Shown here piece after piece: positions 14,009 to 55,342 of a DNA stretch of 64,000 nt. How positions within the stretch are numbered: the first letter of the stretch is position 1; the number at the start of each line of letters is the position of its first letter. The notes beneath the pieces are model-generated. The model was not told the origin of the DNA. It saw only the letters and a program-made list of their open reading frames with translations, and ran no database searches. Both the position numbers and the translations under genes were made by a program. The stretch covers positions 1-64,000 of the forward strand of contig NIVC01001178.1 in the NCBI GenBank assembly GCA_002269645.1. Reading direction: 5' to 3'. This DNA is from Macrostomum lignano. Lineage: Eukaryota.

Positions 14009-14058
14009 CAATACAAAAGTAAAAAAATCATAAAAAATAGCCAATTCTTATTCTAATT

Positions 14059-31809: not shown

Positions 31810-33320
31810 ATGACACTTCCTCGAAGGCGATGCAGCAGGGCCTCTCGAGCCAGCCTTCGCAGCGCCGCAAAGGCCGCGGCAATGGCCCTGAACACCACTG
31901 CGGCGTTCTTTGCCGTGGTGGTTCTGTCAGCTGGTGCCCTGGTTGGCAGCTCGGATCCCAGCACAGTGACGGCGCACATCTGGACGAAGGTGAAGCAGCT
32001 GCCGAAGTGAGTTGACTGGGAGTGAGCACAGGTGACAACTCGGGTTTAAGAAGCTCCAGAGAGTGACAACTCGGGTTTAAGAAGCTCCAGAGAGTGACAA
32101 CTCGGGTTTAAGAAGCTCCAGAGAGTGACAACTCGAGTGTAAGAAGCTCCAGAGAGTGCTAACTTGGGTTTAAGAATCTCCAGAGAGTGCCAACTTGGGT
32201 TTAAGAGGCTCCAGAGTGTTTCAACTCGGGTTTAAGGGGCTCCAGAGAGTGACAACTCGGGTTTAAGAAGCTTCAGCGAGTGACAACTCGGGTTTAAGAG
32301 GCTCCAGAGAGTGACAACTCGGGTTTAAGAAGCTTCAGAGAGTGACAACTCGGGTTTAAGAAGCTTCAGAGAGTGACAACTCGGGTTTAAGAAGCTTCAG
32401 AGAGTGACAACTCGGGTTTAAGAGGCTCCAGAGAGTGACAACTCGGGTTTAAGAAGCTTCAGAGAGTGAAAACTCGGTTTGAGAAGCTGAGGAAGTGACT
32501 AAGCAAGGGTTCAAGACTCTGGGAGTACCGAATTGGGTTTTAAAAACTCATGGGTGGATGAGTTATTAAAATGTTCAAAAATTGCCGCTAAAAGCCGGCT
32601 CCATTAAACGAATTCCTTCATCACACCAACAGATACTCGGTCTACAGCGGACTGCACTTCACCGCCGACACAGCCTATCACACCTGCTTCTCCCTGCCGG
32701 CCAACAGCCTCGCCCTATTGGGCTTCGGCGGCCTCGTGCTGTCCTGCTCGGCGGTGGCCGCGGCCGCTTGCGGAAGTCGTCGAGCTCTGCAAGCTCACTC
32801 GCTGGCCTCAGCTGTCTGCCTGCTGGCTCTGCTGGGCCTTCTCGTTGCTTTATTCGCCACAGACTTGCAGAGTCGAGCTCGGAGCAGCTTGCAAATCGAG
32901 GTGCTCAGTTGGACAGCCGCTTACACGGCTGGCGGATCGTCTGCAGTCGTCAACTCCACGACCGCGCCATTCGGCAGCGCCCTGCTGGACTATCTGCAGA
33001 TGACTCAGAAGTGCTGCGGGTGGACCAACCATTCAGACTATCCAGCTAGCGTTGTTGTGCCCGTTACCTGCTGCCAGCTCGATCCGGACCTGATGATACC
33101 TACTACGGTTGCCTGTCAGCTCGGCACCAATTCTACTCACGGCTGGTACAATACCGGCTGCAGTAAGCTGTTTGACGATCTGCTGGTTCGGTACCTACCG
33201 CAGGCGGTCGCCGCTGCCGCCATGCTGCTGATATCCTCGTTGCTGGTTGGCCTCATGGCCTGCCTGACGGTGGCTAGTCGGGACTTTGTGCGAGAGCTTC
33301 GTGAGGCGGCACTGGAGTGA
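31810..33320 (+). CDS. Tetraspanin-family protein; exons 31810-32006 and 32648-33320 (289 aa)
   Basis: Four hydrophobic segments. Large extracellular loop with QKCCG, DY, TCC and GC motifs. Phase-2 junction AA|gtgagt ... tctacag|C. Confidence 0.85.
32033..32490. repeat. 31-bp minisatellite GTGACAACTCGGGTTTAAGAAGCTCCAGAGA
   Basis: Fills the tetraspanin intron. Confidence 0.93.
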
Positions 33321-33543
33321 AGAGGACTGTCCAGTTACAGACACAGATGCTGCAGATGGAGACAGAGAATTCACTTGGTAGCGGAACCCAGACTTTTATA
33401 TAAATGTTGAACTGCAGTGAACGACTCATTGTAGATTTATAGGTGATAGCGTCACTGCGTGACTAATTGTTGATGACCAGGTAATCATGTGTCTTATTAT
33501 AGATCACATGTGATCGTGCACATTGTGAATCACATGTGATCAC

Positions 33544-33730
33544 GTGACTCATTGTGGATCACATAGGATCGTGCGTGACTCATTGTGGATCACATAGGAT
33601 CGTGCGTGACTCATTGTGGATCACATAGGATCGTGCGTGACTCATTGTGGATCACATAGGATCGTGCATGACTCATTGTGGGTCACATAGGATCGTGCGT
33701 GACTCATTGTGGATCACATAGGATCGTTGT
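33544..33730. repeat. 31-bp minisatellite GTGACTCATTGTGGATCACATAGGATCGTGC
   Basis: Tandem array 3' of the tetraspanin. Confidence 0.9.
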
Positions 33731-34594
33731 GGCTCATTGTAAATCACAAGTGATCATGTGACTCATTATTGGTCACAGCTAGAGGATCGTGACAAATTAT
33801 GAATCATAGGTGATCATATGGCTCATTGTGGATCACAGGTGGATCATGCAACTAATGATAGATGACAGTCTATAACAAATCGGGCTCGCGAAAATTTATA
33901 GAAAACATGTGTTTAATTGATGTGTCATAAAATTTGATATTTTTTGTTTCTTGCAACTCTAATTTTAATACTTTGTATGAAATTTGTAAATCGCTAGCCC
34001 AAAAATTCAAACAAAATTTTCTGACGATGCTACTTATACTAAATATAATAGTAGCATTATAAATACATTTAAAACTGTATTCCTCATAAAAATCTTACAA
34101 AACTATCGGCTTTGCTCACCCAGCCTTTTCAAACATTTATCTCCGAGTTTGAAACGAAACGCATGTGCTATCTAAGTACTATCTAAGATCGAGTGTACTA
34201 AACCAAAGTTCTCCACAATCTTACTCAAAATACACGGCCACTAGCTTGAGCATTGCTCAAGTAAAAAGATAGAAAGTCAAATCGAAGCGAGTGTGTGCTT
34301 CTATTAAATTAATGCAATTCCAACCAACTATATGCGGCATTTATCGAGCAAAAGAACTGCAGAATTTCCAAACACCAATATTTTCACAAATAAGAAATAA
34401 TTCATTGCGCCATTCAGCATTGAAGCGAATAGATAGATTGGTTATTAATGTGATAAAACAATGAAAAAAGGTACTATGAAGCGAAATAGACTTGATCAGT
34501 TACTCGGGAGAACTACAATACAGATAGTATGAAGGCCACGGTTAATGTGCGGTCAAGATATTGAATTAGCAATACGTAAAGATTGATTACTGAC

Positions 34595-35980
34595 TCAAGC
34601 GGTCTCAGTAACGGCCTGAGCAGCAGCAACTAGATCAGCCTCCTTCTTGGTTTCCTGATGATGCTGACAGCAGGCCGTCTTCAGCTTGTCTTTTATACCA
34701 CGGACCAGATCCTCCTCCTCAGTGGTGGTCTCGTGCGCGTGCTGCACCAGCATCTCGTTGCCGCGGGTGACGCCCCAGTTGTCCGGCTTGCTCATGGCGG
34801 ACGAGTACGGCCGACCGCTGGCCGGGTTGAGGTTCTCCCAGTACTCACGGTTGGCCCGGGCTCGAACCCACGGCTTCGTGTGCATCTTGAGGCCGCCGCC
34901 CCAGACAACGTGCTTCTCAGAGCCGGCTGGGAATCGCCCCCGCTCGGCGGCGAGCTCCTCTGCAACGGCGCGGATGTGGTAGGGCTCGAAGCCGCAGCAG
35001 CCGCCGATGAAGCGGACACCAAGGTCGTAGGCCTCCCTGGCGTAGCGGTGCATGTCCCAGCGGTTGCAGATCCTACTCTCCAGAGCGAATGGGAACTCGG
35101 GCAGGTCAATGAAGCCCTGCTTCCCAGCATCCGGAGTCATGTAGGCCAACGGCTGGCACATCAGGTAGGCCTTGAGATTCTCGCGTTCCAGAGCTTCCTT
35201 CATCAGCTTGATCGCTTCCAGGCTGACGAACGGATCGTAGTGGCAGTTGACGCCCACGATTTTGGCACCAGCGCGAGCCATACGGATGGCACAGTGGCCC
35301 GCGGAGTTGCCGTGCATGTCGCCTTGCGGTCCGATGCACATGCTGCAGGCCACGGGCAGTCCGGTCTCCAGCCCGACCTCGATGGCCCACTCCGCCTCTT
35401 CGACGTGCTCAAAGTACTCACACAGAATGAAGTCGACACCTTCGTCTTTGAAAGCGCGCATCTGGCCTCGGAAAATCTCCTTGGTGTCCTCCTTGCTGGC
35501 GCCGCTCAGGTAAGTCGGGGTCTGGCAGACACCGCCGAGGAACAGGGCGCCGCCCTCCTGGGCCACCTCGCGGGCCACCCGACAAGCGGCAGCGTTGATG
35601 TTTGTGCACTGGCAAAATTAAAAATGAAATTTCGGTATTCCAACGCTCACGAGAGGATTGCTGAGATGGCAAGGTTCAAGTGGGATGCTGGTGTCTTCTG
35701 CACTTACCCCGAATTTCTGCGATGCAGTGTTGCCCCGGTTGGAAAGCTTGTCATCGCTGGCGTAGAAGGTGAACGCCTGCATCACATCAGAGCCGGCTCT
35801 GAGAAACTCGCGATGAAGCTGACGCACAGCTTCCGGATGCTCGACCACCGCTTCCGGTGTCCACGGCCCCGCCTTGACGTAGCCGCGCTTCTCCAGGGCG
35901 AACACGAAGCCGCCGTCTCCGATGACAACCTCGCCGTTGTCAAGCCGCTCCATAATGCCGCGTCGCTCGATGGTGCCCAT
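34595..35980 (-). CDS. BHMT: Betaine-homocysteine S-methyltransferase, copy 1; exons 35708-35980 and 34595-35608 (428 aa)
   Basis: [61 protein letters not shown] (zinc cysteines), [10 protein letters not shown]. Single 99-nt GT-AG intron. Confidence 0.97.
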
Positions 35981-36964
35981 GGCTGCCGTTGGTAGAATTC
36001 TGCTAGAGAATGCTTCGTGGAAATTGGAAATTGCTTCTTCTTTCCAAGCTTTTGGTTATGGAATTTTTAGAGCGCGTTGGAATTTTCCTATTTATAGACG
36101 CGGTCATTTCCGGCGACCTTGGCGGCTGGGGGTGGGGAAACCCCCGATTAAAAGCCGGTTTTTGCCGAAACCGGTCCAGTGACATTCCAGACCGGCAACC
36201 GGTTTTGCCTTTCCAGGACGATCTGATAATTATTGCGAAATCGCGTGCACCAAGGTCGCAGATGCGTTGCTGTTTTTGTCACACCGCCCGGTTGGGTTGG
36301 GCAGGCGTTCTGGATTGGCCAGCTATTTCTATTGAGAAAAGGCTCAGGCGGAGAGGTCACGAGAGTCACGTGATTGCAAGAGGCAGCTAAAATCGAGGGG
36401 TGGAGCTCGGAAGAGGCGAAACTTGAAGTTGCAAATAAAGTTCTGTCGGATTGTTAATTCAGACAGTAGAAAATGTCACGTGACTTAATGTACGTTGAAA
36501 TAGGCTACGCCCTTATCAGCAGTTTCTTGTCTCTCGAACAGTAACTTAGTTTATTTGTCAACAAAGGTAGTTAAACCTGGTTAGAACCAGTTAAAGCCAC
36601 TTGTGTTCTCGCAATTACGAAACTTTTGCTAAATTGGAATTTTCCTTAAAACATAAAATATCATTTTCATTCAACTGGAAAATCTACCGAGGTTAGAAAA
36701 TTCCGCTTGAATTGTTTTCTTCTATAGGAAATTTCTGCAGCCTTCATCTGAGCCTGTCCTGCAGCCAAGAGCCAAGAGGTCAAGATGCTTAGTTGTTCGA
36801 AGATTAACAAATCTTTAGCTTGGGCGACTAAGGCTGGAAGATTAACATCTTCTTGGCCTGCATCTGTCAGGTGAGAATATTGAGAATTATGAATTTCGAT
36901 TTTATGCCTCTCTTTTAAAGTTTGTGTCATAAATTTGTAGTTAGGGTAGTGTGCAGCAGTGTGT

Positions 36965-37860
36965 TTCAGAGCCACTCATCACGGTGACCCCATGATGGTG
37001 ACCCGTCACGTTGACTTCCTCGCGGTGACTCAATCACAGTGGTTTTATCACGGGGACTCCCATCATGTTGACTCAATTACGGTGAGTCTATGATGTTGAC
37101 CCATTCACGGCGACTCCATCACGGTGACTCCATCATGGTGACTCCATCACGGTGACTCCATCACGGTGACTCCATCACGATGACTCCATCACGGTGACTC
37201 AATCATGGTGATTCCATCACGGGGACTTCCATCACGGTGACTCCATCACGGTGACTCCATCACCTTGACTCAATCACGGTGACTCAATCTCGGTGACTCA
37301 ATCTCGGTGTTTCAATCACAGTGACTCCAAGATGTTGACCCATCACGGTGACTTCATCACGGTGACTCCATCACGGTGACTCCATCACATTGACTCCATC
37401 ACGGTGACTCCATCACGGTGACTCCATCACGGTGACTCCATCACGGTGACTCCATCACGGTGACTCCATCACGGTGACTCCATCACGGTGACTTCATCAT
37501 GGTGACTCCATCACGGTGACTCTATCACGGTGACTTCATCACGGTGACTCCATCACGGTGATTCCATCACGGGGACTTCCGTCACGTTGACTCAATCATG
37601 GTGATTCCATCACGGGGACTTCCGTCACGTTGACTCAATCATGGTGATTCGATCACGGGGACTTCCATCACGTTGACTCATTCACGGTGACTCCATCACC
37701 TTGACTCAATCACGGTGACTCAATCTCGGTGTTTCAATCACAGTGACTCCAAGATGTTGACCCATCACGGTGACTTCATCACGGTGACTCCATCACAATG
37801 ACTCCATCATGGTGACTTCATCACGGTGACTTCCATCACGGCGACTCCATCATTTTGACC
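36965..37860. repeat. 14-bp minisatellite GGTGACTCCATCAC
   Basis: Tandem array in the BHMT1-DMGDH intergenic region. Confidence 0.92.
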
Positions 37861-38149
37861 CAATCACGGCACCTCAGCACTACTACATGAACCTGTAGTT
37901 TGAGATGAGAACCATACACAATTCATTGAAATTTCTTTGCCTATCAATTTTAAGAACAGAAATTGAAAATGATTACAGGTGAAATATTCTTTTCAAAAGG
38001 TGAATTAGGTAAACAGAGACGCCACCTCATTCTGTTTGGCGCCTTCCATTTCAGCCTGTTTGCAATGCATTGAGTCATTCGGTGCCCCTTGAGTCATTCG
38101 GTGCCCCTTGAGTCATTTGGCGCTTTTAGGGGTTGGCGTCCCCAATGAA

Positions 38150-38885
38150 TCCGCCATTTGGCGCCCCCCATCGAATATATTTGGCGCCCATATATATATT
38201 TGGCGCCCCCAATGAATCAATTTGGTGCCCCCATTGAATCTATTTGGCGCCCCTATTGGATCTATTTGGCCCCCCTATTGGATCTATTTGGCGCCCCTAT
38301 TGGATCTATTTGGCGCCCCTATTGGATCTATTTGGTGCCTCCATTGGATCAATTTGGCGCCCCCATTGGATCAATTTGGTGCCCCCATTGAATCTATTTG
38401 GCGCCCCCATTGGATCTATTTGGCCCCCCTATTGGATCTATTTGGCGCCCCTATTGGATCTATTTGGCGCCCCTATTGGATCTATTTGGTGCCTCCATTG
38501 GATCAATTTGGCGCCCCCATTGGATCAATTTGGCGCCCCCATTGGATCTATTTGGCGCCCCTATTGTATCCATTTGGCGCCCCTATTGGATCTATTTGGC
38601 GCCCCTATTGTATCTATTTGGCGCCCCTATCGGATCTATTTGGCGCCCCCATTGGATCTATTTGGCGCCCCTATTGGATCTATTTGACGCCCCCATTGGA
38701 TCTATTTGGCGCCCCTATTGGATCTATTTGGCGCCCCTATTGGATCTATTTGACGCCCCCATTGGATCTATTTGGCGCCCCTATTGGATCAATTTGGCGC
38801 CCCTATTGGATCAATTTGGCGCCCCTATTGGATCTATTTTGGCGCCCCCATTGGATCTATTTGGCGCCCCCATTGAATCTATTTT
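38150..38885. repeat. 22-bp minisatellite TTGGCGCCCCTATTGGATCTAT
   Basis: Tandem array; it produces the spurious repetitive ORFs at 38158-38916. Confidence 0.93.
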
Positions 38886-39352
38886 AAGCGCACAAATTTC
38901 GGTTATTGCATGCTGATTCAGGTCTGAACTTCACATAAACATAAACTTGGTCACAGTCACAATCTTGAATATGCTTGAAATTATAATAGCGATATTTTTC
39001 CAGGCACGTATGTTAGTGTTTACACCCAGCTGTGCAACAGACTGTGCGTGTGTGTGTTGACAGAGCCCCCGCATGAGCTGCGCTTGTTATGAACTTTTTG
39101 GGTGCAATCCATATTTTCCCTTGTTTCTATTTTTAAGTTCTAATAGAAAAATGGCATATACTGTTTTCTCAAGTATGGTTAGTCTCACTTTCCTAGAGTG
39201 ACTCACATTTAACCTTGGCGAGCAACTTCATTTAAACAAGATTTAATAACTTTGCCATTACGGCTATAATTTTTGTTTTGGTTCTATCAAGTTCTGTCCA
39301 GTTTGTTCAAGTTTACTTGAACCGAAATGACTGAATGAGTAAACACACGGAA

Positions 39353-39370
39353 AACCGGTTTAAACCGGTT
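39353..39370. promoter_or_regulatory. 18-bp palindrome AACCGGTTTAAACCGGTT (tandem Grainyhead / CP2-type site) upstream of DMGDH
   Basis: Perfect palindrome, identical to 55484-55501. Fits AACCGGTT x2 and CNRG-N6-CNRG. Function is inferred. Confidence 0.55.
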
Positions 39371-39699
39371 CTTCTGCTGTCTGCCGCAGCCAACTCTTGC
39401 CCCCGTCTAGTGGGCTGCTGACTTGTACAGGTTTGAGATTAGTCAGAGTGGCCTTGAAGTTCTGGGGGGTGTGGACGCGCAGGTCATGTGATCTGTCTTT
39501 TTTTGCTTTCTTCGAAATACTACTGTGTAATCTAGGTAAAAGTAGTATAGTGCTTGAAATCCAAATATTTTAAGCTATTTTTTATTTCTTCTCTTAGTTT
39601 CTCCTGTAGCTCAATTTGGCATACCTACTCAAGGCTGCAAGTGTTGAGTAAAAAAATTGTGTTGAGTAGTGTTAAGTAAAAATAATAAGTGTAAAATTT

Positions 39700-40225
39700 A
39701 TAGCCTGTGCTCAGTCTTAGTTATAGATTGTTTACAGTCTCAGTCATAGACTGTTTACAGTCTCAGTCATAGATTGTGTACAGTCTCAGTCATAGATTGT
39801 GTACATTCTCAGTCATAGATTGTGTACATTCTCAGTCATAGATTGTGTACATTCTCAGTCATAGATTGTGTACAACAGTCTCAGTCATAGATTGTGTACA
39901 TTCTCAGTCATAGATTGTGTACATTCTCAGTCATAAATTGTGTACAACAGTCTCAGTCATAGATTGTGTACATTCTCAGTCATAGATTGTGTACAACAGT
40001 CTCAGTCATAGATTGTGTACATTCTGAGTCATAGATTGTTTACAGTCTCAGTCATAGATTTTGTACATTCTGAGTCATAGATTGTTTACAGTCTCAGTCA
40101 TAGATTGTGTACATTCTGAGTCATAGATTGTTTACAGTCTCAGTCATAGATTGTGTACATTCTCAGTCATAGATTGTGTACAACAGTCTCAGTCATAGAT
40201 TGTGTACAACAGTGTCAGTCATAGA
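39700..40225. repeat. 23-bp minisatellite GTGTACATTCTCAGTCATAGATT
   Basis: Same family as 22755-23643; ends about 50 bp before the DMGDH ATG. Confidence 0.93.
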
Positions 40226-40273
40226 CAGCACTGGTCGTGGGACGATGTCACGGCAGGGTGTAAAGAATATTTA

Positions 40274-43200
40274 ATGGAAATGTTCATTCTCAGTAGTGTC
40301 AAAAGCATCAGTTGTTCTACATTATCCTACCCTCGCAGGGCTCTCTCGTCTTCCACAGAGCAGCAGCGCCAGCATCCTCTGTCCAAGCGATCGAGCAATG
40401 AAGCCGAAGTTGTAATCATTGGCGGTGGCATTGTGGGCGTCAGCACTGCTTACCATTTGGCTAAGGCCGGAGTTAAGGATGTTGTTCTGTTGGAGAAATC
40501 TGAACTTACCGCCGGTTCTACTTGGCACGCTGTGAGTAGCGTGTTTAGCGTATCGTCGATAAAATTGCTGACAAAATGTTAAATAAAATATTGAATTTTT
40601 GTTACTTTTATCTCTGTGAATTATTTTACTTCAAAAAAAGACAGTTATGTTGATTTTATCTCGCAGTTAAGTGTTCCATTCCTTTGTAACAGCTCAGTGC
40701 CATTCCTTTGTAACAGTTCATTGCCATTCCTGTGTAACAGTTCAGTGCCATTCCTGTGTAACAGTTCAGTGCCATTCCTTTGTAACAGTTCATTGCCATT
40801 CCTGTGTAACAGTTCATTGCCATTCCTGTGTAACAGTTCAGTGCCATTCCTGTGTAACAGTTCATTGCCATTCCTGTGTAACAGTTCATTGCCATTCCTG
40901 TGTAACAGTTCAGTGCCATTCCTGTGTAACAGTTCAGTGCCATTCCTGTGTAACAGTTCAGTGCCATTCCTTTGTAACAGTTCATTGCCATTCCTGTGTA
41001 ACAGTTCAGTGCCATTCCTGTGTAACAGTTCATTGCCATTCCTGTGTAACAGTTCAGTGCCATTCCTGTGTAACAGTTCATTGCCATTCCTGTGTAACAG
41101 TTCAGTGCCATTCCTGTGTAACAGTTCAGTGCCATTCCTGTGTAACAGTTCAGTGCCATTCCTGTGTAACAGTTCAGTGCCATTCCTGTGTAACAGTTCA
41201 TTGCCATTCCTGTGTAACAGTTCAGTGCCATTCCTGTGTAACAGTTCATTGCCATTCCTGTGTAACAGTTCAGTGCCATTCCTGTGTAACAGTTCATTGC
41301 CATTCCTGTGTAACAGTTCAGTGCCATTCCTGTGTAACAGTTCAGTGCCATTCCTGTGTAACAGTTCATTGCCATTCCTGTGTAACAGTTCAGTGCCATT
41401 CCTGTGTAACAGTTCAGTGCCATTCCTGTGTAACAGTTCAGTGCCATTCCTGTGTAACAGTTCAGTGCCATTCCTGTGTAACAGTTCAGTGACATTCCTG
41501 TCTGACAGTTCAGTGCCATTCCTGTCTAACACACAGAAAATGTTCTATAAAAACTGTTTCCCCACACGCAGGCCGGCCTCACCACATTCTTCCACCCGGG
41601 CATTAACGTGCGCCGCGTCCATTACTACAGCATGCAACTGTACTCTCAGCTCGAGGCGGAGACTGACCAACCAGTGGGTCTGCACACTCCAGGCTCCCTG
41701 CGCCTCATCACTACGCCGACTCGCATGGACGAGGCCCGATATCAGATGTCCAGGGCAGCCTGGTGCCAAGCCGAACAGCACCTAGTCGGACCGGAGAAAT
41801 GCTTGGAATTGTGTCCACTGCTCAACATGAGCACAGTGCTCGGTGGGATCTACAACCCTGGAGATGGTCACATCGATCCCTACTCGGTCACAATGGCGCT
41901 AGCCGCCGGGGCGCGTAAGTATGGCGCCGAGCTGTACCAGAACAGCCAGGTACGCGCCACAAGTCAGGACTCAAAAGGTATCTGGACAATAGTGACCGAT
42001 CACGGCGAACTCAAATCCAAGCATCTGGTCAACGCGGCTGGATTTCACGCTCGTGACGTTGGAAAACTGTCGGGATTGGACCTGCCAATCATTCCGGTGC
42101 ATCATCAGTACGTCATCACCAAAGCTGTGCCTGAGGTGGTCCAATTGAAGCGAGAGCTTCCTGTACTGCGCGACTTGGAAGCCTCCTACTATCTTCGCCA
42201 GGAGAAGCAGGGCCTCTTAGTGGGGCCGTACGAGTCTGCGGAGAACATGATGCTCTGCACTGACTGGTACGATAACGGGGTGCCGGACTCGTTCGGTAGG
42301 GAGCTGTTTGAGCCGGACCTTGGCCGAATCATGCCTCACCTGGAGCGCGCCATGGAGATGGTGCCGGCGATGCAGAACGCCGAGATTCAATCCGTCATAT
42401 CCGGGCCGATCACCTACAATGCGGAGAATGCCGGACTGATTGGCCCGGTGGAGGGGCCGCTGAATTATTGGTTGCTAGGCGGCCTTGGTTACGGCATAAT
42501 CCACGGTGGCGGCGTTGGCAAATACGTGGCGGACTGGATTCGTACTGGCGAACCGCCGTACGATTTGATTGAGCTGGACGCTAACAGGTATGGCAGAGTT
42601 TGGGGTCGGCAATTGCATGTTTAGACTGGGGAAACTGTGTGTTGAGATTGGGCAACCGTATCTTTGGAGTGTGGGTCAACCGTGTGTTTAAATTGGGCAA
42701 CCGTGTCTTTGGAGTGTGGGTCAACCGTGTGTTTAAATTGGGCAACCGTGTCTTTGAATTTTGGGTCAACCGTGTCTTTGAATTTTGGGTCAACCGTGTC
42801 TTTGGACTGGGGCAACCGTGTCTTTGGACTGGGGCAACCGTGTCTTTGGACTGGGGCAATCGTGTGTTTAGACTGGGGCAACCGTGTGTTTAGAATGGGG
42901 CAATCGTGTGTTTAGATTGGGCAACCGTGTCTTTGGAGTGTGGGTCAACCGTGTCTTTAGAGTGGGGCAACCGTATCTTTGGAGTGAGGCAACCTTGTCT
43001 TTGGATTTTGGGTCAACCGTGTCTTTGGACTGGGGCAATCGTGTGTTTAGACTGGGAAACCGTGTGTTTAGACTGGGAAACCGTGTGTTTAGACTGGGAA
43101 ACCGTGTGTTTAGACTGGGGCAATCGTGTGTTTAGACTGGGGCAATCGTGTGTTTAGACTGGGGCAATCGTGTGTTTAGACTGGGGCAATCGTGTGTTTA

Positions 43201-46200
43201 GACTGGGGCAACCGTTTCTTTGGACTGGGGCAACCGTTTCTTTGGACTGGGGCAACCGTGTCTTTGGACTGGGGCAACCGTGTCTTTGGACTGGGGCAAC
43301 CGTGTCTTTGGACTGGGGCAATCGTGTGTTTAGACTGGGGCAACCGTTTCTTTGGACTGGGGCAACCGTTTCTTTGGACTGGGGCAACCGTTTCTTTGGA
43401 CTGGGGCAACCGTTTCTTTGGAGTGGGACAATTTAAAAGTCAGGGCCGCTATACGTACACCTTGTGTGACCGCTTACCTTTATACGCATCCGTGTGCGTG
43501 CTCCGGGATGAGCGGATCGATCGTCGAGCTGCTTGACTTTTCGCTTTTGCCCCAAAGCGAGCCAACTACCCATCCGACAGGTACGGCTGGTGGGCCGACC
43601 GGAGCTACACGCACGCGAAGAGCCGCGAGACCTACGGGCTGAATAACGCTGTCGGCTATCCCAAGGAGGAGCGATTCGCCGGCAGGCCAACGAAACGCGC
43701 TGCTCAGACCAGCGCCCTGTACGACGAGTTGAAATCGGCCGGTGCCGAGTTTGGCTTTCACAACGGCTGGGAGCAGCCGCACTGGTTCGGCTTGACCGAG
43801 GAGGAGCGACGCTACGAGCCTTCTTTCCGACGAGGGAACTGGTTCCCAGCGATGCAGCGGGAATGCGAGGGAGTGCTGAACCGGGCTGGCGTTATGGATA
43901 TTACGCCATTTTCAAAGTTCGAGATTTCTGGTATGTGGCGTTAGGGTTTGAACTAGTGTCACTCTGAATCTGCTAATGTGTCACTCTGAATCTGCCAATG
44001 TGTCACTCTGAATCTGCCAATGCGTCACTCTGAATCAGCCAATGTGTCACTCTGAATCTGCCAATGTGTCACTCTGAATCTGCCAATGTGTTACTCTGAA
44101 TCAGCCAATGTGTCACTCTGAATCAGCCAATGTGTCACTCTGAATCAGCCAATGTGTCACTCTGAATCTGCCAATGTGTCACTCTGAATCAGCCAATGTG
44201 TCACTCTGAATCAGTTAATTTGTCACTCTGAATCAGCCAATGCGTCACTCTGAATCAGCCAATGTGTCACTCTGAATCAGCCGATGTGTCACTCTGAATC
44301 AGCCAATGTGTCACTCTGAATCTGCCAATGTGTCACTCTCAATCTACCAATGTGTCACTCTGAATCTGCCAATGTGTCACTCTGAATCAGCCAATGTGTC
44401 ACTCTGAATCAGCCAATGTGTCACTCTGAATCAGCCAATGTGTCACTCTGAATCTGCCAATGTGTCACTCTGAATCAGCCAATGTGTCACTCTGAATCAG
44501 CCAATGTGTCACTTCGAACCAGCCAATGTGTCACTCTGAATCTGCCAATGTGTCACTCTGAATCAGCCAATGTGTCACTCTGAATCAGCCAATGTGTCAC
44601 TTCGAACCAGCCAATGTGTCACTCTGAATCTGCCAATGTGTGACTCTGAATCAGCCAATGTGTCACTCTGAATCTGCCAATGTGTCACTTTGAATCAGCC
44701 AAAGTGTCACTCTGAATCAGCCAATGTGTCACTCTGAATCTCCGAATGTGTCACTCTGAATCTCCGAATGTGTCACTCTGAATCAGCCAATGTGTCACTC
44801 TGAATCAGCCAATGTGTGACTCTGAATCAGCCAATGCGTCACTCTGCATCTGTCAATGTGTCACTCTGAATCAGCCAATGTGTCACTCTAAATCTATAAT
44901 TGTCACTCTGAATGTCTGAATGTCACTCGTTAGATGCAGGAGGCCGTGTGCACCCTGGCGCACCTTAAACGACATTGTCACACAACCGGCCAGAGACATT
45001 GCTGCCCGTTTCGCCGACTCCCCTAAGCAGACACACAAGCGCGCGGATACGTACGCAGTCATACGCACAGGCACACACTCACACAGGAGTTTACAGCGGC
45101 TCTTTTATCGTTAGGCATGTACACTTCACCGTGCCTTGGGGGTTGGCCCTCAAAGGCGTTAATTGCACGAGCAGAGCCAAGCCGAGATTCCAATTCAGCC
45201 CCAAATTAATTTGACTGCACTTGGAATCGAGCCTGGGCCGCTGGCACATCAGAGCGCCACGCTGGACCACTGGGCTCCGGCCTCAGTTCTGAATCTGACA
45301 GTTGTCCAATGGCCAGTCATTAGAATCCATAACCATAATCCAAGAAATATTGTTTTTCACTGGGTTTTCTCATTGCATTCAAAATATCAAGGTTTCCAAG
45401 CAGAATGCATCCAACAAGACCAACCCTCAAAAATTCTCAACAAGGCCCTCGAGCCGGAGAATTCCTGGACCTGGTGACTGCAAACCGACTGCCCAAAGTG
45501 AACCGCACCTGCATCACGCACATGCTCACGCCAAGGGGCCGAGTGTTCTCTGAGATGACTCTGACTTGCTTGCCAGCCGATGATGGCCAACAGAAGTTCC
45601 GGGCCCTGACCGGTTCCGGCTCTGAGATGCACGACCTCATCTGGCTGAAGGACTGGCGACACAAACTCCGCTTCCAGGACGGCGTCAAGATCGACAACGT
45701 CACGGATTCGATCGGCTGCCTGTCTGTAGCCGGTCCGCTGTCCCGTGAAATTCTTCAGTCGTTGACCTCGGAGAGCCTCGATGCGGGGTCTTATCCGTTT
45801 CTGCAGGCTAAGCAGCTGCAAATTGATGGAGTTGACTGCTTGGCCATCAGAATATCCTACACAGGAGAGCTGGGCTGGGAGCTCTACTGTGGGATCGGAG
45901 AGCTGGCCAGGCTGTACAAATCCATCTGGCGGTGTGGACAGCCGCTCGGTCTGGTGAACTTCGGCTCGTACGCGATGAACTCGCTCCGGCTGGAGAAAGG
46001 GTTCGCCATGTGGGGAGCCGAGATGAACTGCGACACTGGCCCATTGGAGGCTGGCCTCGGCGGCTTCATCAGGCTGGGAAAGTCTGCAGATTTTGTTGGG
46101 AAAGCTGCCGTGGCGGAGGCGAAGCTGAAACTGCAACAGGATGGAGCCCGTCAGTTGAGGATGCTGCGAGTTGACAGTGTTGACGTGGATCCTGAAGGCA

Positions 46201-47767
46201 ACGAATCAGTCTGGTTGGACGGCAAGGTGAGCAAACCGTACCTGGTTTTACTTATTTCATAGATTATCGAACAGTTTATAGTAAAATATGAAAACGAGTT
46301 AACCTACGTAAAAATAAAATCATCGTTCCTCTAAGTTTGGAAGTTATACTACTTTCTATAAGTAGGTTGTAAATGTAAACATGTAAATAGCTATTTGATT
46401 GGGAAATGAAACACGGTATGTAAAATATATAATTACAACTATTATATATTGAATAACCCTGCCCATTCCACTGTCAGTCATGTACACTGTGTAACCCCTT
46501 AACAAACAAAAAGTATGATAATTACAGACAGATTAAAAAGTAGGGTTTCCTTGGATTCTCAGAATCGTGCGTTCGTTTGATGTGGCAATGACGCAGTGGC
46601 ATTGTTATTAACGGAGTACAGTGGTCTATTGTTTCATACATGTAGCTAACTAATTTCCGGGCATTAATCAAATCATTTAACTGATTGGTTGGAACAGAGC
46701 AACTGAACAAACTGCTATTGTACCAGTATTCCATTCTTCATGCGGTACAATGCAGAATTCCCTAAGCTAATCTATTCTTCCTACTTTAGTAAAGATTATT
46801 AAAAGCTGCTCCAATTCATCTGACTTCCTCATAGAGGCATTAATCTTGTATTTGCATCATATATACCGGTAGATTTGTACTTTAGTGTACGGTAATATAG
46901 AGATATATATATAATCGGTAAACCTTAGCAAGGGCCTTGATACATGAATGATGTGTAACTTTTACATGTACGTTTAAATCGTGAAACTTTTTGTGCAAAA
47001 CTTTGAGTTTAAATCTTACCAAATCTCTATTCTTCTGCCTAAATCAACCTAAATCTAGATTCATCTACCTGAATCTAGACCCATCAAACTAAATCTAGAC
47101 CCATCAACTTAAATCTAGATTCATCTATCTAAAGCTGGACTCATCAACCTAAATCTAGACCTATCTACCTGAATTTAGATTCATCTAACTAAATCTGGAT
47201 TCATCTACCTAAATCTAGATTCATCTAACTAAATCTAGATTCATCTACCTAAATCTAGATTCATCCAACTAAAGCTAGATTCATCTACCTAAATCTAGAC
47301 CTATCTACCTGAATTTAGATTCATCTAACTAAATCTAGACCCATCAAACTAAATCTAGACCCATCAAACTAAATCTAGACCCATCAAACTAAATCTAGAC
47401 CCATCAAACTAAATCTAGACCCATCAACCTAAATCTAGACCCATCAAACTAAATCTAGACCAATCAACCTAAATCTAGACCCATCAAACTAAATCTAGAT
47501 ATATCTACCTAAACCTTCGCAATAAACCACCACTCAAACCCCTAAAAGGTGGTCGGCAACACGACATCCGGTAGCTACAGTTTCAGCCGCGGTCACGGAC
47601 TCGCCTTTGCATACGTGCCCGCCAGCCTGGGCGCCGGCACCCAGCTGGAGGTGGATCTTCTCGGTCGTCGCGTCCCGGCAGTGGTGCTGTCGAAACCACC
47701 GTTGCTGCCGGAGCAGGCGAGAAAGAAGAAACCCGAAGCGGCATCCGTTGGTTCGAGTCAGCAATGA
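40274..47767 (+). CDS. DMGDH: Dimethylglycine dehydrogenase, mitochondrial; exons 40274-40531, 41572-42587, 43581-43930, 45445-46226, 47549-47767 (874 aa)
   Basis: FAD motif [10 protein letters not shown], covalent-flavin motif [10 protein letters not shown]|[22 protein letters not shown], and a GcvT folate domain ([19 protein letters not shown]). Exon total 2625 nt is in frame. The last two acceptors are AAG. The N-terminus is Ser/Arg-rich like a presequence; exact start uncertain. Confidence 0.95.
40665..41530. repeat. 24-bp minisatellite CAGTTCAGTGCCATTCCTGTGTAA
   Basis: Fills DMGDH intron 1. Confidence 0.95.
42620..43425. repeat. About 22-bp minisatellite GACTGGGGCAACCGTGTCTTTG
   Basis: Fills DMGDH intron 2. 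Confidence 0.93.
43955..44915. repeat. 22-bp minisatellite GTGTCACTCTGAATCAGCCAAT
   Basis: 5' part of DMGDH intron 3. Confidence 0.95.
44940..45282 (-). mobile_element. SINE family A, copy 3 (DMGDH intron 3)
   Basis: Reverse-complement similarity to 39-396 along its length. Confidence 0.82.
47040..47515. repeat. 20-bp minisatellite AAATCTAGACCCATCAAACT and variants
   Basis: 3' end of DMGDH intron 4, ending close to the acceptor. Confidence 0.9.
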
Positions 47768-49080
47768 TCTGGATCACGATAGTCATTGTGGTTCATGATG
47801 ACGATTAGAAAATTGATTGTGTACAGATAGAGATAGATTCGTGATTAGATTGGGATATAAACATGATTAGATTGGAATACAATCGTGATTATATTGGGAT
47901 AATCGTTATTAGATTTCGATATAATCGTGATTAGATTGAGATAGAATCGCGATTAGTTTTAGATAGAACCGTCATTAGTTCGCTGTTATTAGGATTCATT
48001 GTAGATATTGACAGGGATATGTTATAATGTCACTTCGTTAAGTACGACCTTTTGATTGATTTATTTCTTTTACCAAATGTTTGTTTCCTAATTATAATGT
48101 AAATCTTCCATCGGACTCAGTCCGGAAATTCTCGTCGCAAAATATGTTCGTTCAATAGTTTATCTATAAGATCTATAGATAAAAATAGATTCGTGGGTTA
48201 ATGTATTTATTAGGGTAAAATTCTGTCATTAAATGCCCTTGACAGAAACTGGTGCAGATTTGATTTATTTTTTGTTTAATTTATTATACTTTTAAAATTG
48301 TTTATAGAATTTGGATTTTGCTTAATCTTGTTCTCATTTTTCAGATCTCTCAGTAATTTCGGTTGCTGCCACGTAGTGCGAGGAATCATTGATTTAGTAA
48401 ATTTTTATGCTGTCTTTATTAATTAATAAATATTATGTTATAAGCAATCTTTTGTAAAATGATCCTGATTAGTAATGCGCATTCTAATAAATTAAATTTA
48501 CATACCAATAGCTACAGTTCTCGTCGTAAATACCTTTATTTTTTTAAATACATCCTTATTTATTGCCGGTGTGTGTTCGTAAAACTGTGCTTTTTCCGGC
48601 TTGAGAATAATTTAACACATTTTCTAATGTTAGTTAAAGGTTTGAAAAAATTAAATTTAAAATAAGGGCAAAGTTTTCAATGTGGACGAAACAAACAGGG
48701 TTTTTTTAAATTTCACTTATTTATTTTGCTGTGGGGTGGCAGCCGTACAGTCTGAAATTTTACTTAGCTTTATACTGGACGTCTATAGAACTAGTAAGGC
48801 TCGCAGTTTAATGTTGACTGGAGTAAATTGAAAGCAATAATGAATAAGTTCTTTATAGCTAATGTCTAAGAAATGATGAAAAAATTAAAACTGTCAGAAA
48901 CGTTTTAGCTTACTGCGTTTTAATTTGCAAAATTATTCTTGTAGAGTAGAATGACCTTTCTCGACACTTTTCTATCATCGATTTACTAAGACTTCGTGTT
49001 TGAATTTCGCAGCAGCCATAATTATCAATGAGGAAGATGACAATGAAACAAATAAAAAGCAAATGGTTGATTTATTTTTT

Positions 49081-52000
49081 CTATTTCTTCCTCATCTGCT
49101 GGCCCAGCTGCTTCACTCGATTGTCTTCCTCTTCGGTGGTCTCGTGCGCGTGCTGCACCAGCATCTCGCTGCCGCGGGTGACGCCCCAGTTGTCCGGCCT
49201 GCTCATGGCGGCCGAGTATGGCCGACCGCTGGCCGGGTTCAGGTTCTCCCAGTAGTCCCGGCCAGACCGGGCTCGAATCCACGGTTTAGTGCTCATTTTC
49301 ATTCCGCCGCCCCAGGCGATGTGCTTCTCGGAGCCGGCTGGGAATCGGCCTCTTTCGGCGGCGAGCTCCTCGGCGATGGCGCGGATGTGATAGGCCTCGA
49401 AGCCGCAGCAGCCGCCAATGTAGCGGACGCCAAGGTCGTAGGCAGCCCTGCCAGATTTAAAATATACCGATTTTACTACTTATTATACTACTGCTGATTC
49501 TAATATAGACTTGCGAAATCGCTTCTGTTGCACTGCATGCTGGTTTAAAACAATTGACAATTTTAATCCAACAATTTGAAGCTTCAAAAAGTATGAATTA
49601 GACTAATGGTGAATTGATTAGACTAATAGTGAATTGATTAGACTAATGGTGAATTGATTAGACTAATGGTGAATTAATTAGATTAATGGTGAATTGATTA
49701 GACTAATGGTGAATTTATTAGACTATTGGGGCATGGTTTAGACTAATAACGCATGAATTAGACTAATAAGGCGTGGATTAGACTAATAACGCATAAATTA
49801 GACTAATAAGGCATGGATTAGACTAATAAGGCATGGATTAGACTAATAAAGCATGGATTAGACTAATAAAGCATGGATTAGACTAATAAAGCATGTATTA
49901 GACTAATAAAGCATGGATTAGACTAATAAGGCATGGATTAGACTAATAAGGCATGGATTAGACTAATAAAGCATGGGTTAGACTAGTAAGGCATGGATTA
50001 GACTAATAAAGCATGGATTAGACTAATAAAGCATGGGTTAGACTAATAAAGCATGGATTAGACTAATAAAGCATGTATTAGACTAATAAAGCATGGATTA
50101 GACTAATAAGGCATGAATTAGACTAATAAGGCATGGATTAGACTAATAAAGCATGGGTTAGACTAATAAAGCATGGATTAGACTAATAAGGCATGGATTA
50201 GACTAATAAAGCATGGATTAGACTAATAAAGCATGGATTAGACTAATAAGGCATGGATTAGACTAATAAAGCATGGGTTAGACTAATAAAGCATGGATTA
50301 GACTAATAAGGCATGGATTAGACTAATAAGGCATGGATTAGACTAATAAGGCATGGATTAGACTAATAAAGCATGGATTAGACTAGTAAAGCATGTATTA
50401 GACTAATAAGGCATGAATTAGACTAATAAGGCATGGATTAGACTAATAAGGCATGGATTAGACTAATAAGGCATGGATTAGACTAATAAGGCATGGATTA
50501 GACTAACAAGGCATGGATTAGACTAATAAGGCATGGATTAGACTAATAAAGCATGGATTAGACTAATAAAGCATGTATTAGACTAATAAAGCATGGATTA
50601 GACTAATAAGGCATGGATTAGACTAATAAGGCATGAATTAGACTAATAAGGCATGGATTAGACTAATAAGGCATGGATTAGACCAAAGGACAATAAATGT
50701 AGATTCAACCTGTCTCACCTAGCGAAGCGGTGCATGTCCCAGCGGGTGCACAATCGACTCTCCATGGCCAAAGGAAACTCGGGCAGGTCGATGCAGCCCT
50801 GCTTCTCAGCATCCGGAGTCATATAGGCACGGGCTGGCACATCAGGTAGGCCTTGAGATTCTCGCGCTCCAAACCAGCCTTCATCAGCTTGATCGCTTCC
50901 AGGGTGACAAACGGATCGAAGTGGCAGTTGACGCCCACGAGTTTCGCACCAGCGCGAGCCATACGGACGGCGCAGTCGCCCGCGGAGTTGCCGTGCATGT
51001 CGCCTTGCGGTCCGATGCACATCGTGCAGGCCACGGGCAGCCCGGTCTCCAGCCCGACCTGCGGCGGGGGGGCGTTGTTGGTTGGCTAGATTAGCAATCC
51101 ATTATCACGTACTTTAATTTCCTGATTTGGCTAGATTAGCAATCCATCATCGTGTACTTTAATTTCCTGATTTGGCTAGATTAGCAATCCATCATCGTGT
51201 ACTTTAATTTCCTGATTTGGCTAGATTAGCAATCCATCATCGTGTACTTTAATTTCCTGATTTGCCTAGATTAGCAATCCATCGTGTACTTTTATTCCTT
51301 ATTTGGCTAAATTAGCTATATATCGTGTACTTTTATTTTCTGATTTGGCTAGATTAGCAATCCATCATCGTGTACTTTAATTTCCTGATTTGGCTAGATT
51401 AGCAATCCATCATCGTGTACTTTTATTCTCTGATTTGGCTAGATTAGCAATCCATCGTGTACTTTTATTTCTTATTTGGCTAAATTAGCTATATATCGTG
51501 TACTTTTATTTCTTATTTGGCTAAATTAGCTATATATCGTGTACTTTTATTTTCTGATTTGGCTAGATTAGCAATCCAATACAGCCTGCAATTTTATTAA
51601 TAATTTGGATCAGTTTGTGGATAATTTGAAAATGCTAGTCCATGGTCGAAACCAATGCCAAAAATGAGGTCTGTTCGAACTGTTTCGACCATAGACTAAC
51701 ATATTCTTTGCAATTTTTTTAACACCGAGTCGAGTATCTTACCTCAATGGCCCACTCTGCCTCCTCAACATGCTCAAAGTACTCGCACAGCACCAAGTCG
51801 GCTCCTTCGGCCTTGAAAGTCTGCATCTGGCCACGGAAGATGGCCTGGATTGAAGCTTTGTCACCGCCGCTCAGGTAGGTCGGAGTCTGGCACACTCCGC
51901 CTAGAAACAGGGCGTCACCTTCTTGAGCGACCTCACGAGCAATGCGACACGCGGCGGTGTTGATGGCGGTGCACTGAAATTCAAGGGGGGTTGACTATAT

Positions 52001-52941
52001 ATTAGCAATCCATTCTATGGGTTTGATAGATTAGCAATCCATTCTATGGGTTTGATAGATTAGCAATCCATTCTATAGGTTTGGCTATAGATTAGCAATC
52101 CATTCTATAGGTTTGCTAGATTAGCAATCCATTCTATAGGTTTGATAGATTAGCAATCCATTTTATAGGTTTGATAGATTAGCAATCCATTCTATAGGTT
52201 TGATAGATTAGCAATCCATTCTATAGGTTTGCTAGATTAGCAATCCATTCTATGGGTTTGATAGATTAGCAATCCATTCTATGGGTTTGATAGATTAGCA
52301 ATCCATTCTATGGGTTTGATAGATTAGCAATCCATTCTATAGGTTTGATAGATTAGCAATCCATTCTATAGGTTTGATAGATTAGCAATCCATTTGGGTC
52401 ACTTGGGTCACTTAATATAAGAAGGATCATACAGAATTTTCAGCGTTGTGAAATTTCGATCTTATGAATCCCCTCCCATCCATTTTATTAATATGAACGC
52501 CAGTTTGAGCTAAATTACTAACGATCTGAAAAAAGTTTTACAAACAGTTTAGTAGAAAGAGTCGAATCAAAAAGTGTGAGGCGAAATCAAAGAGCTGTTT
52601 TTGTATCTCTCCAGATGAAGCGTTAAAGCAGATTGCTCAAGCGTTCTCATGTGCTCAAACTCTAAGTCTCACCCCATACTTTTCCTGAGCCGTGTTGCCT
52701 CTATTGGAAAGCTTGTCCTCGCTGGCATAGTAAGTGAACGCCTGCATCACATCAGAGCCGGCTCTGAGAAACTCTCGATGCAGCTGCTTCACAGCTTCCG
52801 GGTATTCGACCACCGCTTCCGGTGTCCACGGCCCCGCCTTGACGTAGCCGCGCTTCTCCAGGGCGAACACGAAGCCGCCGTCTCCAATGACAACCTCGCC
52901 GTTGTCAAGCCGCTCCAGAATGCCGCGTCTTTTGTTTGACA

Positions 52942-52942
<1 letters not shown>
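49081..52942 (-). CDS. BHMT: BHMT copy 2; exons 52673-52942, 51743-51973, 50719-51058, 49081-49447; apparent 1-bp deletion near 50830 (pseudogene or sequencing error)
   Basis: Same BHMT motifs as copy 1. Exon total 1208 nt is one short of a multiple of 3. CAGCCCGTGCCTATATG here versus CAGCCGTTGGCCTACATG in copy 1. Confidence 0.85.
49595..50685. repeat. 20-bp minisatellite GCATGGATTAGACTAATAA(G/A)
   Basis: Fills BHMT2 intron 3. Confidence 0.95.
51080..51580. repeat. About 45-bp minisatellite TTTGGCTAGATTAGCAATCCATCATCGTGTACTTTAATTTCCTGA
   Basis: Fills most of BHMT2 intron 2. Confidence 0.9.
52000..52395. repeat. 29-bp minisatellite GTTTGATAGATTAGCAATCCATTCTATAG
   Basis: BHMT2 intron 1. Shares the core AGATTAGCAATCCAT with the intron 2 repeat. 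Confidence 0.92.
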
Positions 52943-52985
<43 letters not shown>

Positions 52986-52986
52986 G

Positions 52987-53049
<63 letters not shown>

Positions 53050-53050
53050 G

Positions 53051-53149
<99 letters not shown>

Positions 53150-53170
53150 GTGTCTGTCTGTGTGTCTGTG

Positions 53171-53259
<89 letters not shown>

Positions 53260-53272
53260 GCCTGTCTGTCTG
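52943..53272. repeat. (TGTC)n / (GACA)n microsatellite abutting the BHMT2 start codon
   Basis: On the minus strand it reads ...GACAGACA-ATG. Confidence 0.95.
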
Positions 53273-53976
53273 CTGATTTTCCGCACTATCAGTCGCAGCT
53301 GTTGCATATATATACCCACAGCTACTCCGTCCAAATGAAAACCAGTTCCAGCTGGTTTTACAATCAAACTTATCGATTCGAAACTTTTTCTTAAGTTGAC
53401 CCAAGAAGTCTGAGCATTGGAAAAGATTCGAGATTTCTGAGAGCAGCTTATCGTGAAACCTAGTAAACATGGCTTCCTACCCTCGTCAAACCCGCAATTC
53501 AGGTTCCACATTTCTCTAGTCCAAGGAGTTCCGAAATTTTGCATCGGAATCAAAATTAATTTTTTTCATTGAAAATAAAACAACTCTTTGTTTTAATAAG
53601 CTGTATTCAAACTCACTGTCTCTTTACATCGCGAGATTTTAAATTAATCAATCGAATTTTCAAATCTATTTCTGTAGATTAACATTCCAGATCTGTTAGT
53701 TAACGCAGTCCTTGTTCAGCTTTAGTCTAGATTGTAAAACAATTTTGTGACTTGGTCATTATCTGTGAGTAAGCTGCTAGGGGGTAAACTAGGGGGGGGG
53801 GTACGTATTAAACACCTGAGAAATTCTCACGCAGTTCCTCAGCTCACGCTTTCGATACGTTGCGCCACGAAACTCGCTTTGGCTCAGTTTGGGGCGTTCA
53901 CAGACAATTTCTGTGTTTGTGTTATATGAATTGAGGGCAGATTTAATGATACAGTAGTTGATAAAACTGCTTTCTG

Positions 53977-54975
53977 GGTGCTGAGGTCACTGGGTGCTGA
54001 GGACACTGGGTGCTGAAGTCACTGGGTGCTGAGGACACTGGGTGCTGAGGACACTGGGTGCTGAGGACACTGGGTGCTGAGGACACTGGGTGCTGAGGAC
54101 ACTGGGTGCTGAGGACACTGGGTGCTGAGGACACTGGGTGCTGAGGACACTGGGTGCTGAGGACACTGGGTGCTGAGGACACTGGGTGCTGAGGACACTG
54201 GGTGCTGAAGTCACTGGGTGCTGAGGACACTGGGTGCTGAGGACACTGGGTGCTGAGGACACTGGGTGCTGAGGACACTGAGTGCTGAGGACACTGGGTG
54301 CTGAGGACACTGGGTGCTGAGGACACTGGGTGCTGAAGTCACTGGGTGCTGAGGACACTGGGTGCTGAGGACACTGGGTGCTGAAGTCACTGGGTGCTGA
54401 GGACACTGGGTGCTGAAGTCACTGGGTGCTGAGGACACTGGGTGCTGAGGACACTGGGTGCTGAGGACACTGGGTGCTGAGGACACTGGGTGCTGAGGAC
54501 ACTGGGTGCTGAGGACACTGGGTGCTGAGGACACTGGGTGCTGAGGACACTGGATGCTGAGGACACTGGGTGCTGAGGACACTGGTTGCTGAGGACACTG
54601 GGTGCTGAGGACACTGGGTGCTGAGGACACTGGTTGCTGAGGTCACTGGGTGCTGAGGACACTGGGTGCTGAGGACACTGGGTGCTGAGGTCACTGGGTG
54701 CTGAGGACACTGGGTGCTGAGGACACTGGGTGCTGAGGACACTGGGTGCTGAGGACACTGGGTGCTGAGGACACTGGGTGCTGAGGACACTGGGTGCTGA
54801 GGTCACTGGCTGCTGAGGTCACTGGGTGCTGAGGTCACTGGCTGCTGAGGTCACTGGGTGCTGAGGTCACTGGGTGCTGAGGACACTGGGTGCTGAGGTC
54901 ACTGGGTGCTGAGGTCACTGGGTGCTGAGGACACTGGCTGCTGAGGACACTGGGTGCTGAGGTCACTGGTTGCTA
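53977..54975. repeat. 16-bp minisatellite GGGTGCTGAGGACACT
   Basis: Tandem array downstream of the extra BHMT exon 1. Confidence 0.95.
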
Positions 54976-55072
54976 AGGAGCTCCATTTTGAGGATATTCT
55001 GCAGCTGAAGATTTAAGGGGAAAGACAGAAAACCAAAATAATATCAAAAGCCACTATCAGCCACAAACTCAC

Positions 55073-55342
55073 CCCGAATTTCTGCGATGCAGTGTTGCCC
55101 CGGTTGGAAAGCTTGTCCTCGCTGGCATAGTAAGTGAACGCCTGCATCACATCAGAGCCGGCTCTGAGAAACTCGCGATGAAGCTGCTTCACAGCTTCTG
55201 GGTACTCGACCACCGCTTCCGGTGTCCACGGCCCCGCCTTGACGTAGCCGCGCTTCTCCAGGGCGAACACGAAGCCGCCGTCTCCAATGACAACGTCGCC
55301 ATTGTCGAGCCGCTCCATAATGCCTCCTCGTTTGTTCGACAT
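55073..55342 (-). CDS. BHMT: Third copy of BHMT coding exon 1 only (alternative first exon or truncated paralogue)
   Basis: [32 protein letters not shown]...SQKFG followed by an intact phase-0 donor GTGAGT. No further BHMT exons before 52942. Confidence 0.85.

Follow-up and report, generated by a model that had tools for sequence, protein, structure and literature searches.

Head-to-head BHMT and DMGDH genes of the flatworm Macrostomum lignano, a pair most likely inherited from the bilaterian ancestor

Organization of the BHMT/DMGDH locus

In a 64-kb stretch of the Macrostomum lignano genome (contig NIVC01001178.1, positions 1–64,000; hereafter the window), two genes of glycine-betaine catabolism lie side by side and are transcribed away from each other: BHMT-A, for a BHMT (betaine-homocysteine S-methyltransferase), and DMGDH, for a dimethylglycine dehydrogenase. 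A second BHMT gene, BHMT-B, follows beyond DMGDH, giving the order BHMT-A (–), DMGDH (+), BHMT-B (–), in which BHMT-A and DMGDH are head-to-head and DMGDH and BHMT-B tail-to-tail. BHMT acts in the cytosol, where betaine and homocysteine yield dimethylglycine and methionine, and DMGDH is a mitochondrial flavoenzyme that oxidizes dimethylglycine, giving sarcosine and transferring the methyl carbon to tetrahydrofolate. All gene pieces named in a preliminary description of this DNA were recovered in their places, and its guess of a flatworm was correct, the large BHMT exon being 98% identical to M. lignano BOX15_Mlig031806g1 (P0103). The window is collinear with contig NIVC01000293.1 of assembly GCA_002269645.1 (~189–231 kb) at ~96–98% nucleotide identity, with differing repeat copy numbers; on sequence grounds, it represents a further haplotype, homeologue or assembly of the M. 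lignano BHMT/DMGDH locus. The NIVC01000293.1 locus with its annotation is referred to below as the reference. P0105, the annotated BHMT-B protein, comes from the same 575-kb contig as P0103 and matches the other BHMT copy of the window.

BHMT-A consists of exon 1 (35980–35708, –; ATG at 35980, GT donor) and exon 2 (35608–34595, –; AG acceptor, PF02574, ending at the stop codon), separated by a 99-nt GT-AG intron. The intact product of 428 aa is identical to P0103 at 423 of 428 positions and reproduces the annotated length. PF02574 is matched with 162.9 bits over profile positions 1–282 of 283, covering the catalytic barrel, and residues 5–401 align with residues 9–404 of rat BHMT (1umy) at 626 bits without large gaps, a full-length collinearity that includes the C-terminal region. 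The VNCH and GGCCG motifs, corresponding to the zinc-binding cysteine triad (human Cys217, Cys299 and Cys300), are identical to rat and human BHMT in the aligned columns. By family criteria, BHMT-A is classed as a betaine-homocysteine S-methyltransferase.

DMGDH is encoded on the plus strand in six exons. Exon 1 (36785–36870; ATG, GT donor) was placed from the homologous coding start in the reference annotation (L001:9196). Exon 2 (40339–40531; AG acceptor at 40337–40338) carries the GGGIVG dinucleotide-binding motif and STWH, and exon 3 (41572–42587; AG and GT splice sites, 451 bits to human DMGDH) holds the rest of the DAO domain. Exon 4 (43581–43930) encodes FAO_M and the start of GCV_T, exon 5 (45445–46226) the GCV_T folate-binding domain, and exon 6 (47549–47767) GCV_T_C and the stop codon. 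Every intron is GT-AG, and the six exons together encode an intact protein of 881 aa, matching the annotated length exactly once exon 1 is included. The N-terminus contributed by exon 1 (MLSCSKINKSLAWATKAGRLTSSWPASV...) is basic, contains no acidic residue and looks like a mitochondrial presequence. This small upstream exon also changes the geometry of the locus: the head-to-head arrangement given in the preliminary description stands, while its distance of about 4.3 kb gives way to 804 bp between the two start codons, since the apparent gap is mostly DMGDH intron 1, 61% of which is minisatellite.

The four domains follow in the order DAO (223.5 bits), FAO_M (52.2 bits), GCV_T (207.9 bits) and GCV_T_C (65.5 bits). 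Over 819 aligned positions the protein is 57.9% identical to human DMGDH (5l46; 1053 bits), and the next PDB family, bacterial dimethylglycine oxidase, scores 318 bits. The histidine of its STWHAAGL segment occupies the column of human His91, with an identical residue there; His91 is the site of covalent 8-alpha attachment of flavin adenine dinucleotide (PMC5082570). A homologue search returned only DMGDH among the named animal matches of the plus-strand gene; the proteins it returned were all shorter than 600 aa, with no DMGDH-family protein above that length, not even the 881-aa protein of M. lignano itself. Neither sarcosine dehydrogenase (SARDH) nor PDPR occurred among the PDB matches, and no animal SARDH among the homologue matches below 600 aa. 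A carp match at 38% identity proved to be a frameshift-garbled DMGDH.

Conservation of the pair across bilaterian lineages

The genes called within 10 kb on either side of BHMT or DMGDH were compared in 11 other animals, and the loci were also checked by tblastn with the flatworm proteins. BHMT and DMGDH are adjacent in representatives of Platyhelminthes, Brachiopoda, Annelida, Priapulida, Cephalochordata and Vertebrata, and the pair is divergent in all six. The gap measures ~800 bp in M. lignano, in both the window (804 bp) and the reference assembly, ~570 bp in the brachiopod Lingula anatina, 3.8 kb in the annelid Capitella teleta, ~930 bp in the priapulid Priapulus caudatus (an ecdysozoan), ~120 bp in the cephalochordate Branchiostoma belcheri and ~350 bp in the bird Falco. 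In all five other species the divergent neighbor of BHMT is a gene of DAO–FAO_M–GCV_T–GCV_T_C architecture; in high-scoring segment pairs, flatworm DMGDH is ~56% identical to that of Lingula, ~59% to that of Priapulus and ~56% to that of Branchiostoma, the same level as to human DMGDH. An intron directly after ...STWHA is common to the DMGDH-type neighbors of all five species and the flatworm gene.

The head-to-head pair therefore most likely dates, as judged from this comparison, to the bilaterian ancestor, with later loosening in some lineages; common ancestry is favored over convergence because chordates, one ecdysozoan and three phyla of spiralians all have the pair in the same orientation. 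Of the two options raised in the preliminary description, an ancient bilaterian metabolic cluster is thus supported by the divergent pair in six lineages, and convergent clustering is disfavored by the same orthologues in the same orientation. As far as the survey indicates, only the head-to-head BHMT/DMGDH pair is ancient, and the second BHMT is lineage-specific. The tie to osmolyte handling raised in the preliminary description is a possibility.

Local gene-number changes were also observed around the pair. In Branchiostoma belcheri (L008), three DMGDH-like copies (12879–21843, +; 29400–23530, –; 32769–42539, +) adjoin a single BHMT, so amphioxus appears to have amplified DMGDH locally, not BHMT. 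Fundulus heteroclitus (L009) carries two tandem BHMT genes (4121–7346 and 10001–12027). In Lingula anatina (L003), a JMY-like gene (17146–20832) is located two genes downstream of BHMT; human JMY is a BHMT neighbor, with intergenic single-nucleotide polymorphisms labeled "BHMT JMY" (PMC12389381), so that DMGDH-BHMT-JMY may be the conserved block.

The mammalian DMGDH-BHMT2-BHMT cluster (human 5q14.1; mouse) is the closest known system: it likewise combines the same two adjacent families with an extra BHMT copy, and the likeness extends to the divergent orientation and short gap, shown here for the vertebrate Falco. Human DMGDH and BHMT2 are, we presume, also head-to-head. Mammalian BHMT2, however, lies between DMGDH and BHMT, whereas the extra flatworm copy lies beyond the DMGDH 3′ end, inverted and apparently of independent origin. 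Mammalian BHMT2 is distinguished by deletions; no deletions of this type were seen in BHMT-A (by alignment) or in BHMT-B (P0105, by inspection), and both flatworm copies are full-length and BHMT-type, BHMT-B being judged on the reference protein P0105. In mouse, Bhmt, Bhmt2 and Dmgdh form a cluster, are served by common SPIC/NANOG-bound enhancers and change expression together (PMC11801372).

Among ancestral microsyntenic pairs conserved in animals, those in 5′-5′ orientation with short intergenic regions, such as HSPE1-HSPD1 and HADHA-HADHB, are enriched for co-expression (Irimia et al. 2012, PMC3514665). BHMT and DMGDH are likewise non-paralogous neighbors kept across phyla, divergent, functionally linked and mostly less than 1 kb apart; unlike partners of one complex in that class, they are consecutive enzymes residing in the cytosol and the mitochondrial matrix. 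The pair is a new example of this known class, conserved 5′-5′ pairs that tend to be co-regulated, rather than a new kind of system, and nothing in the locus reveals a novel enzyme or pathway, or a novel type of element in the genome. No description of BHMT-DMGDH linkage across phyla was found in the literature searched; the pair may be listed in the supplements of the main microsynteny surveys, which lay outside this search. Neither gene name is present in the supplements of a 49-genome microsynteny survey, and a paper on BHMT/BHMT2 evolution mentions neither DMGDH nor synteny. SAR11 and Roseobacter bacteria carry the glycine-betaine catabolic genes bhmT, dmgdh and sardh, which belong to the same pathway and enzyme families as the flatworm pair; in SAR11 HTCC1062, unlike in the animal pair, the locus numbers of the three genes are separate and not adjacent (PMC3160333). 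Where bacterial clustering is present it is achieved by operons, in contrast to the putative bidirectional promoter of the animal pair, and nothing indicates that a bacterial cluster gave rise to the animal pair.

BHMT-B, its duplicated first exon and the surrounding sequence

BHMT-B lies on the minus strand with its 3′ end facing that of DMGDH, 1.3 kb away. The distal exon 1 (55342–55073), the one used in the reference annotation, shows no difference from the reference copy and corresponds to the beginning of P0105; a proximal, extra exon 1 (52942–52673) is located inside the annotated intron 1. Each of the two has its ATG, an uninterrupted reading frame and a GT donor. Exon 2 (51973–51743) and exon 3 (51058–50719) follow, and exon 4 (49447–49081; stop codon 49081–49083) is 100% identical to P0105 residues 281–402. 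The second BHMT beyond DMGDH was thus rightly recognized in the preliminary description, while its "third exon 1" proves to be the annotated first exon of BHMT-B (the distal copy, at 55342), the proximal copy at 52942 being the spare. In the reference, BHMT-B encodes 402 aa (P0105) with a PF02574 match of 154.1 bits and both the VNCH and GGCCG motifs.

The two exon 1 copies differ at 24 nt, amounting to 13 synonymous and 6 non-synonymous codons, and both are intact in the reference as well. This preponderance of synonymous differences suggests that the proximal copy has been under purifying selection, and it could serve as an alternative first exon of BHMT-B. Exon 3 of the window lacks a single G relative to the reference (L002) (GG to G at ~50828–50830) and is otherwise identical over ~380 aligned nt. 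The reading frame consequently fails past ...QPV, before the Cys-Cys zinc ligands, and restoring one G yields P0105 exactly; the 1-bp frameshift would mark either a null allele or an error of assembly. An assembly artefact as the source of BHMT-B and its spare exon 1 was rejected, both being present in the reference contig, which differs in sequence and repeat copy number.

In a neighbor-joining tree, BHMT-A, BHMT-B and a transcript-sized sequence (P0104) group in one clade, separate from the BHMT of all other animals. BHMT-A and BHMT-B share 83.6% amino-acid identity, as against 62–71% to the Lingula and mink proteins compared. Because the two copies cluster together and are this similar, BHMT-B is, by sequence comparison, a duplicate of the flatworm lineage that arose separately from mammalian BHMT2. 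Outside the coding sequence, BHMT-A and BHMT-B showed no homology that could delimit the duplicated unit. BHMT-A exon 2 aligns as a single block with the spliced exons 2, 3 and 4 of BHMT-B (85% nucleotide identity over 896 nt). BHMT-B introns 2 and 3 fall at residues ~168 and ~282, and the intron positions common to other phyla at ~155, 205, 265 and 342; by the intron positions, either BHMT-A would have lost introns in a 3′-biased way or BHMT-B would have gained two.

Tandem repeats occupy 35–86% of every long intron of DMGDH (36871–40338, 40532–41571, 42588–43580, 43931–45444 and 46227–47548) and BHMT-B (49448–50718, 51059–51742, 51974–52672 and 52943–55072). They are minisatellites of 14–45 bp that differ from intron to intron, some arrays beginning ~30 nt or less from the splice donor. 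A run of a 4-bp unit, (TGTC)n/(CAGA)n, adjoins the proximal exon 1 copy of BHMT-B, which directly follows it, and the 99-nt intron of BHMT-A is free of tandem repeats.

No further betaine-pathway gene was found in the 64-kb window, where the flanking open reading frames are tetraspanin-like, AKAP17A-like, retroelement integrase or without a Pfam match. The tetraspanin-like frame (32718–33320, +; PF00335, 52.8 bits) lies downstream of BHMT-A, and the reference annotation calls no gene at the homologous place. Retroelement frames at 17434–18726 (+) contain the zinc-binding domain of an integrase together with an rve core domain and probably represent a Ty3/gypsy-type fragment. Two exons of an AKAP17A-like gene with an RNA-binding domain (PF25015) are located at 7042–7581 and 9141–9572 (–).

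Maintenance and meaning of the pair

The BHMT-A/DMGDH intergenic region (35981–36784) spans 804 bp between the two ATGs and is 98% identical to the reference haplotype, collinear without gaps; it is presumed to be a bidirectional promoter. Near its middle, two GTCACGTGA E-box palindromes (36365–36373 and 36475–36484) lie 110 bp apart. The 64-kb window contains five GTCACGTGA matches at four places (33540, 36365, 36475 and 60403), against 0.25 expected from shuffles, and the reference haplotype retains both intergenic E-boxes. The corresponding intergenic regions of the five other species lack the E-boxes, which were accordingly rejected as a conserved promoter feature; any regulatory role for them is speculative.

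We consider it likely that the M. lignano locus is a copy of an ancestral bilaterian pair, co-expressed through a bidirectional promoter and held together by selection, with BHMT-B as a later duplicate. The short intergenic region would act in both directions and thereby match the expression of two consecutive steps, and selection for this co-expression would keep the genes together. A plausible reason for the coupling comes from established enzymology: because dimethylglycine inhibits BHMT, it may pay to make BHMT together with the enzyme that clears its inhibitor. BHMT-B would have arisen outside the ancestral unit, through an inverted duplication that took place locally and later, in the flatworm lineage, and would then have gained its duplicated first exon.

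Several observations weigh against this explanation. Within 10 kb of BHMT, no DMGDH-like sequence was found in the sea anemones Actinia tenebrosa and Exaiptasia diaphana, the sea urchin Diadema antillarum, the acorn worm Saccoglossus kowalevskii or the killifish Fundulus heteroclitus; the constraint on adjacency can therefore be broken. With 10-kb flanks, a pair not seen is not necessarily unlinked, since looser linkage looks the same as loss, and with two sea anemones as the whole cnidarian sample an origin before the bilaterians is possible as well. No sequence motif common to the BHMT/DMGDH intergenic regions of the six species was found, and co-regulation of BHMT-A and DMGDH in M. lignano itself is something we infer. 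The assignment of the plus-strand gene to DMGDH, moreover, draws on best matches and position.

Were the plus-strand gene an orthologue of SARDH or PDPR, the refuting case named in the preliminary description, the two genes would not catalyze consecutive steps, and Pfam domains alone do not tell the three families apart. We regard this as scarcely conceivable: DMGDH and SARDH share only about a third of their residues, as against the 57.9% over 819 positions shared with the crystallised human DMGDH; the named animal matches are all DMGDH; the Falco gene beside BHMT has the same four-domain architecture; and the flatworm gene occupies the place beside BHMT held by mouse Dmgdh (PMC11801372). An independent bringing together of BHMT and DMGDH in flatworms and other animals, which the lack of the pair within 10 kb in two cnidarians, two ambulacrarians and one teleost might suggest, is highly improbable as well, the same two orthologues standing in the same divergent orientation in six lineages across deuterostomes, ecdysozoans and spiralians; six independent origins are far less parsimonious than one origin and a few losses.

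The main rival accepts an ancestral pair and dispenses with selection for co-expression: the genes would have been retained passively, as so short a gap offers few harmless breakpoints for rearrangement. Gaps of only ~120–930 bp in five of the six lineages fit this account, as do the loss or loosening of the pair in several lineages and the lack of a motif common to the intergenic regions. Set against it, most ancestral neighbors have been scrambled over the same time span, and Capitella retains the pair despite its 3.8-kb gap. Conserved pairs are, furthermore, enriched for 5′-5′ orientation and co-expression (PMC3514665), and BHMT and DMGDH are consecutive in one pathway and co-regulated in mouse (PMC11801372). 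Passive retention is accordingly judged unlikely, though less remote than the two possibilities above, and selection for co-expression of the ancestral pair is preferred.

A more far-reaching version of this preferred explanation is offered tentatively, as a possibility that we do not favor outright. BHMT and DMGDH may form a bidirectional-promoter unit of bilaterian age, held for more than half a billion years by the need to match a product-inhibited BHMT with the enzyme that clears the product. Local duplication might also have tuned dosage at this locus again and again, as in BHMT2 of mammals, BHMT-B and the duplicated exon 1 of Macrostomum, the tandem BHMT genes of Fundulus and the three DMGDH copies of amphioxus, and the block may reach JMY in Lingula and human.

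Few examples exist in animal genomes of consecutive metabolic enzymes kept physically paired across phyla. Through the pair, the methionine-salvage step in the cytosol is linked to the mitochondrial reaction that takes away its product and supplies the folate pool. With gaps of 0.1–0.9 kb in five of six lineages, it provides a small test case for bidirectional promoter function that would be conserved while the underlying sequence turns over, and the transgenic tractability of M. lignano makes a promoter test possible there. Positional orthology, finally, helps to name flatworm genes that are now annotated only as hypothetical proteins.

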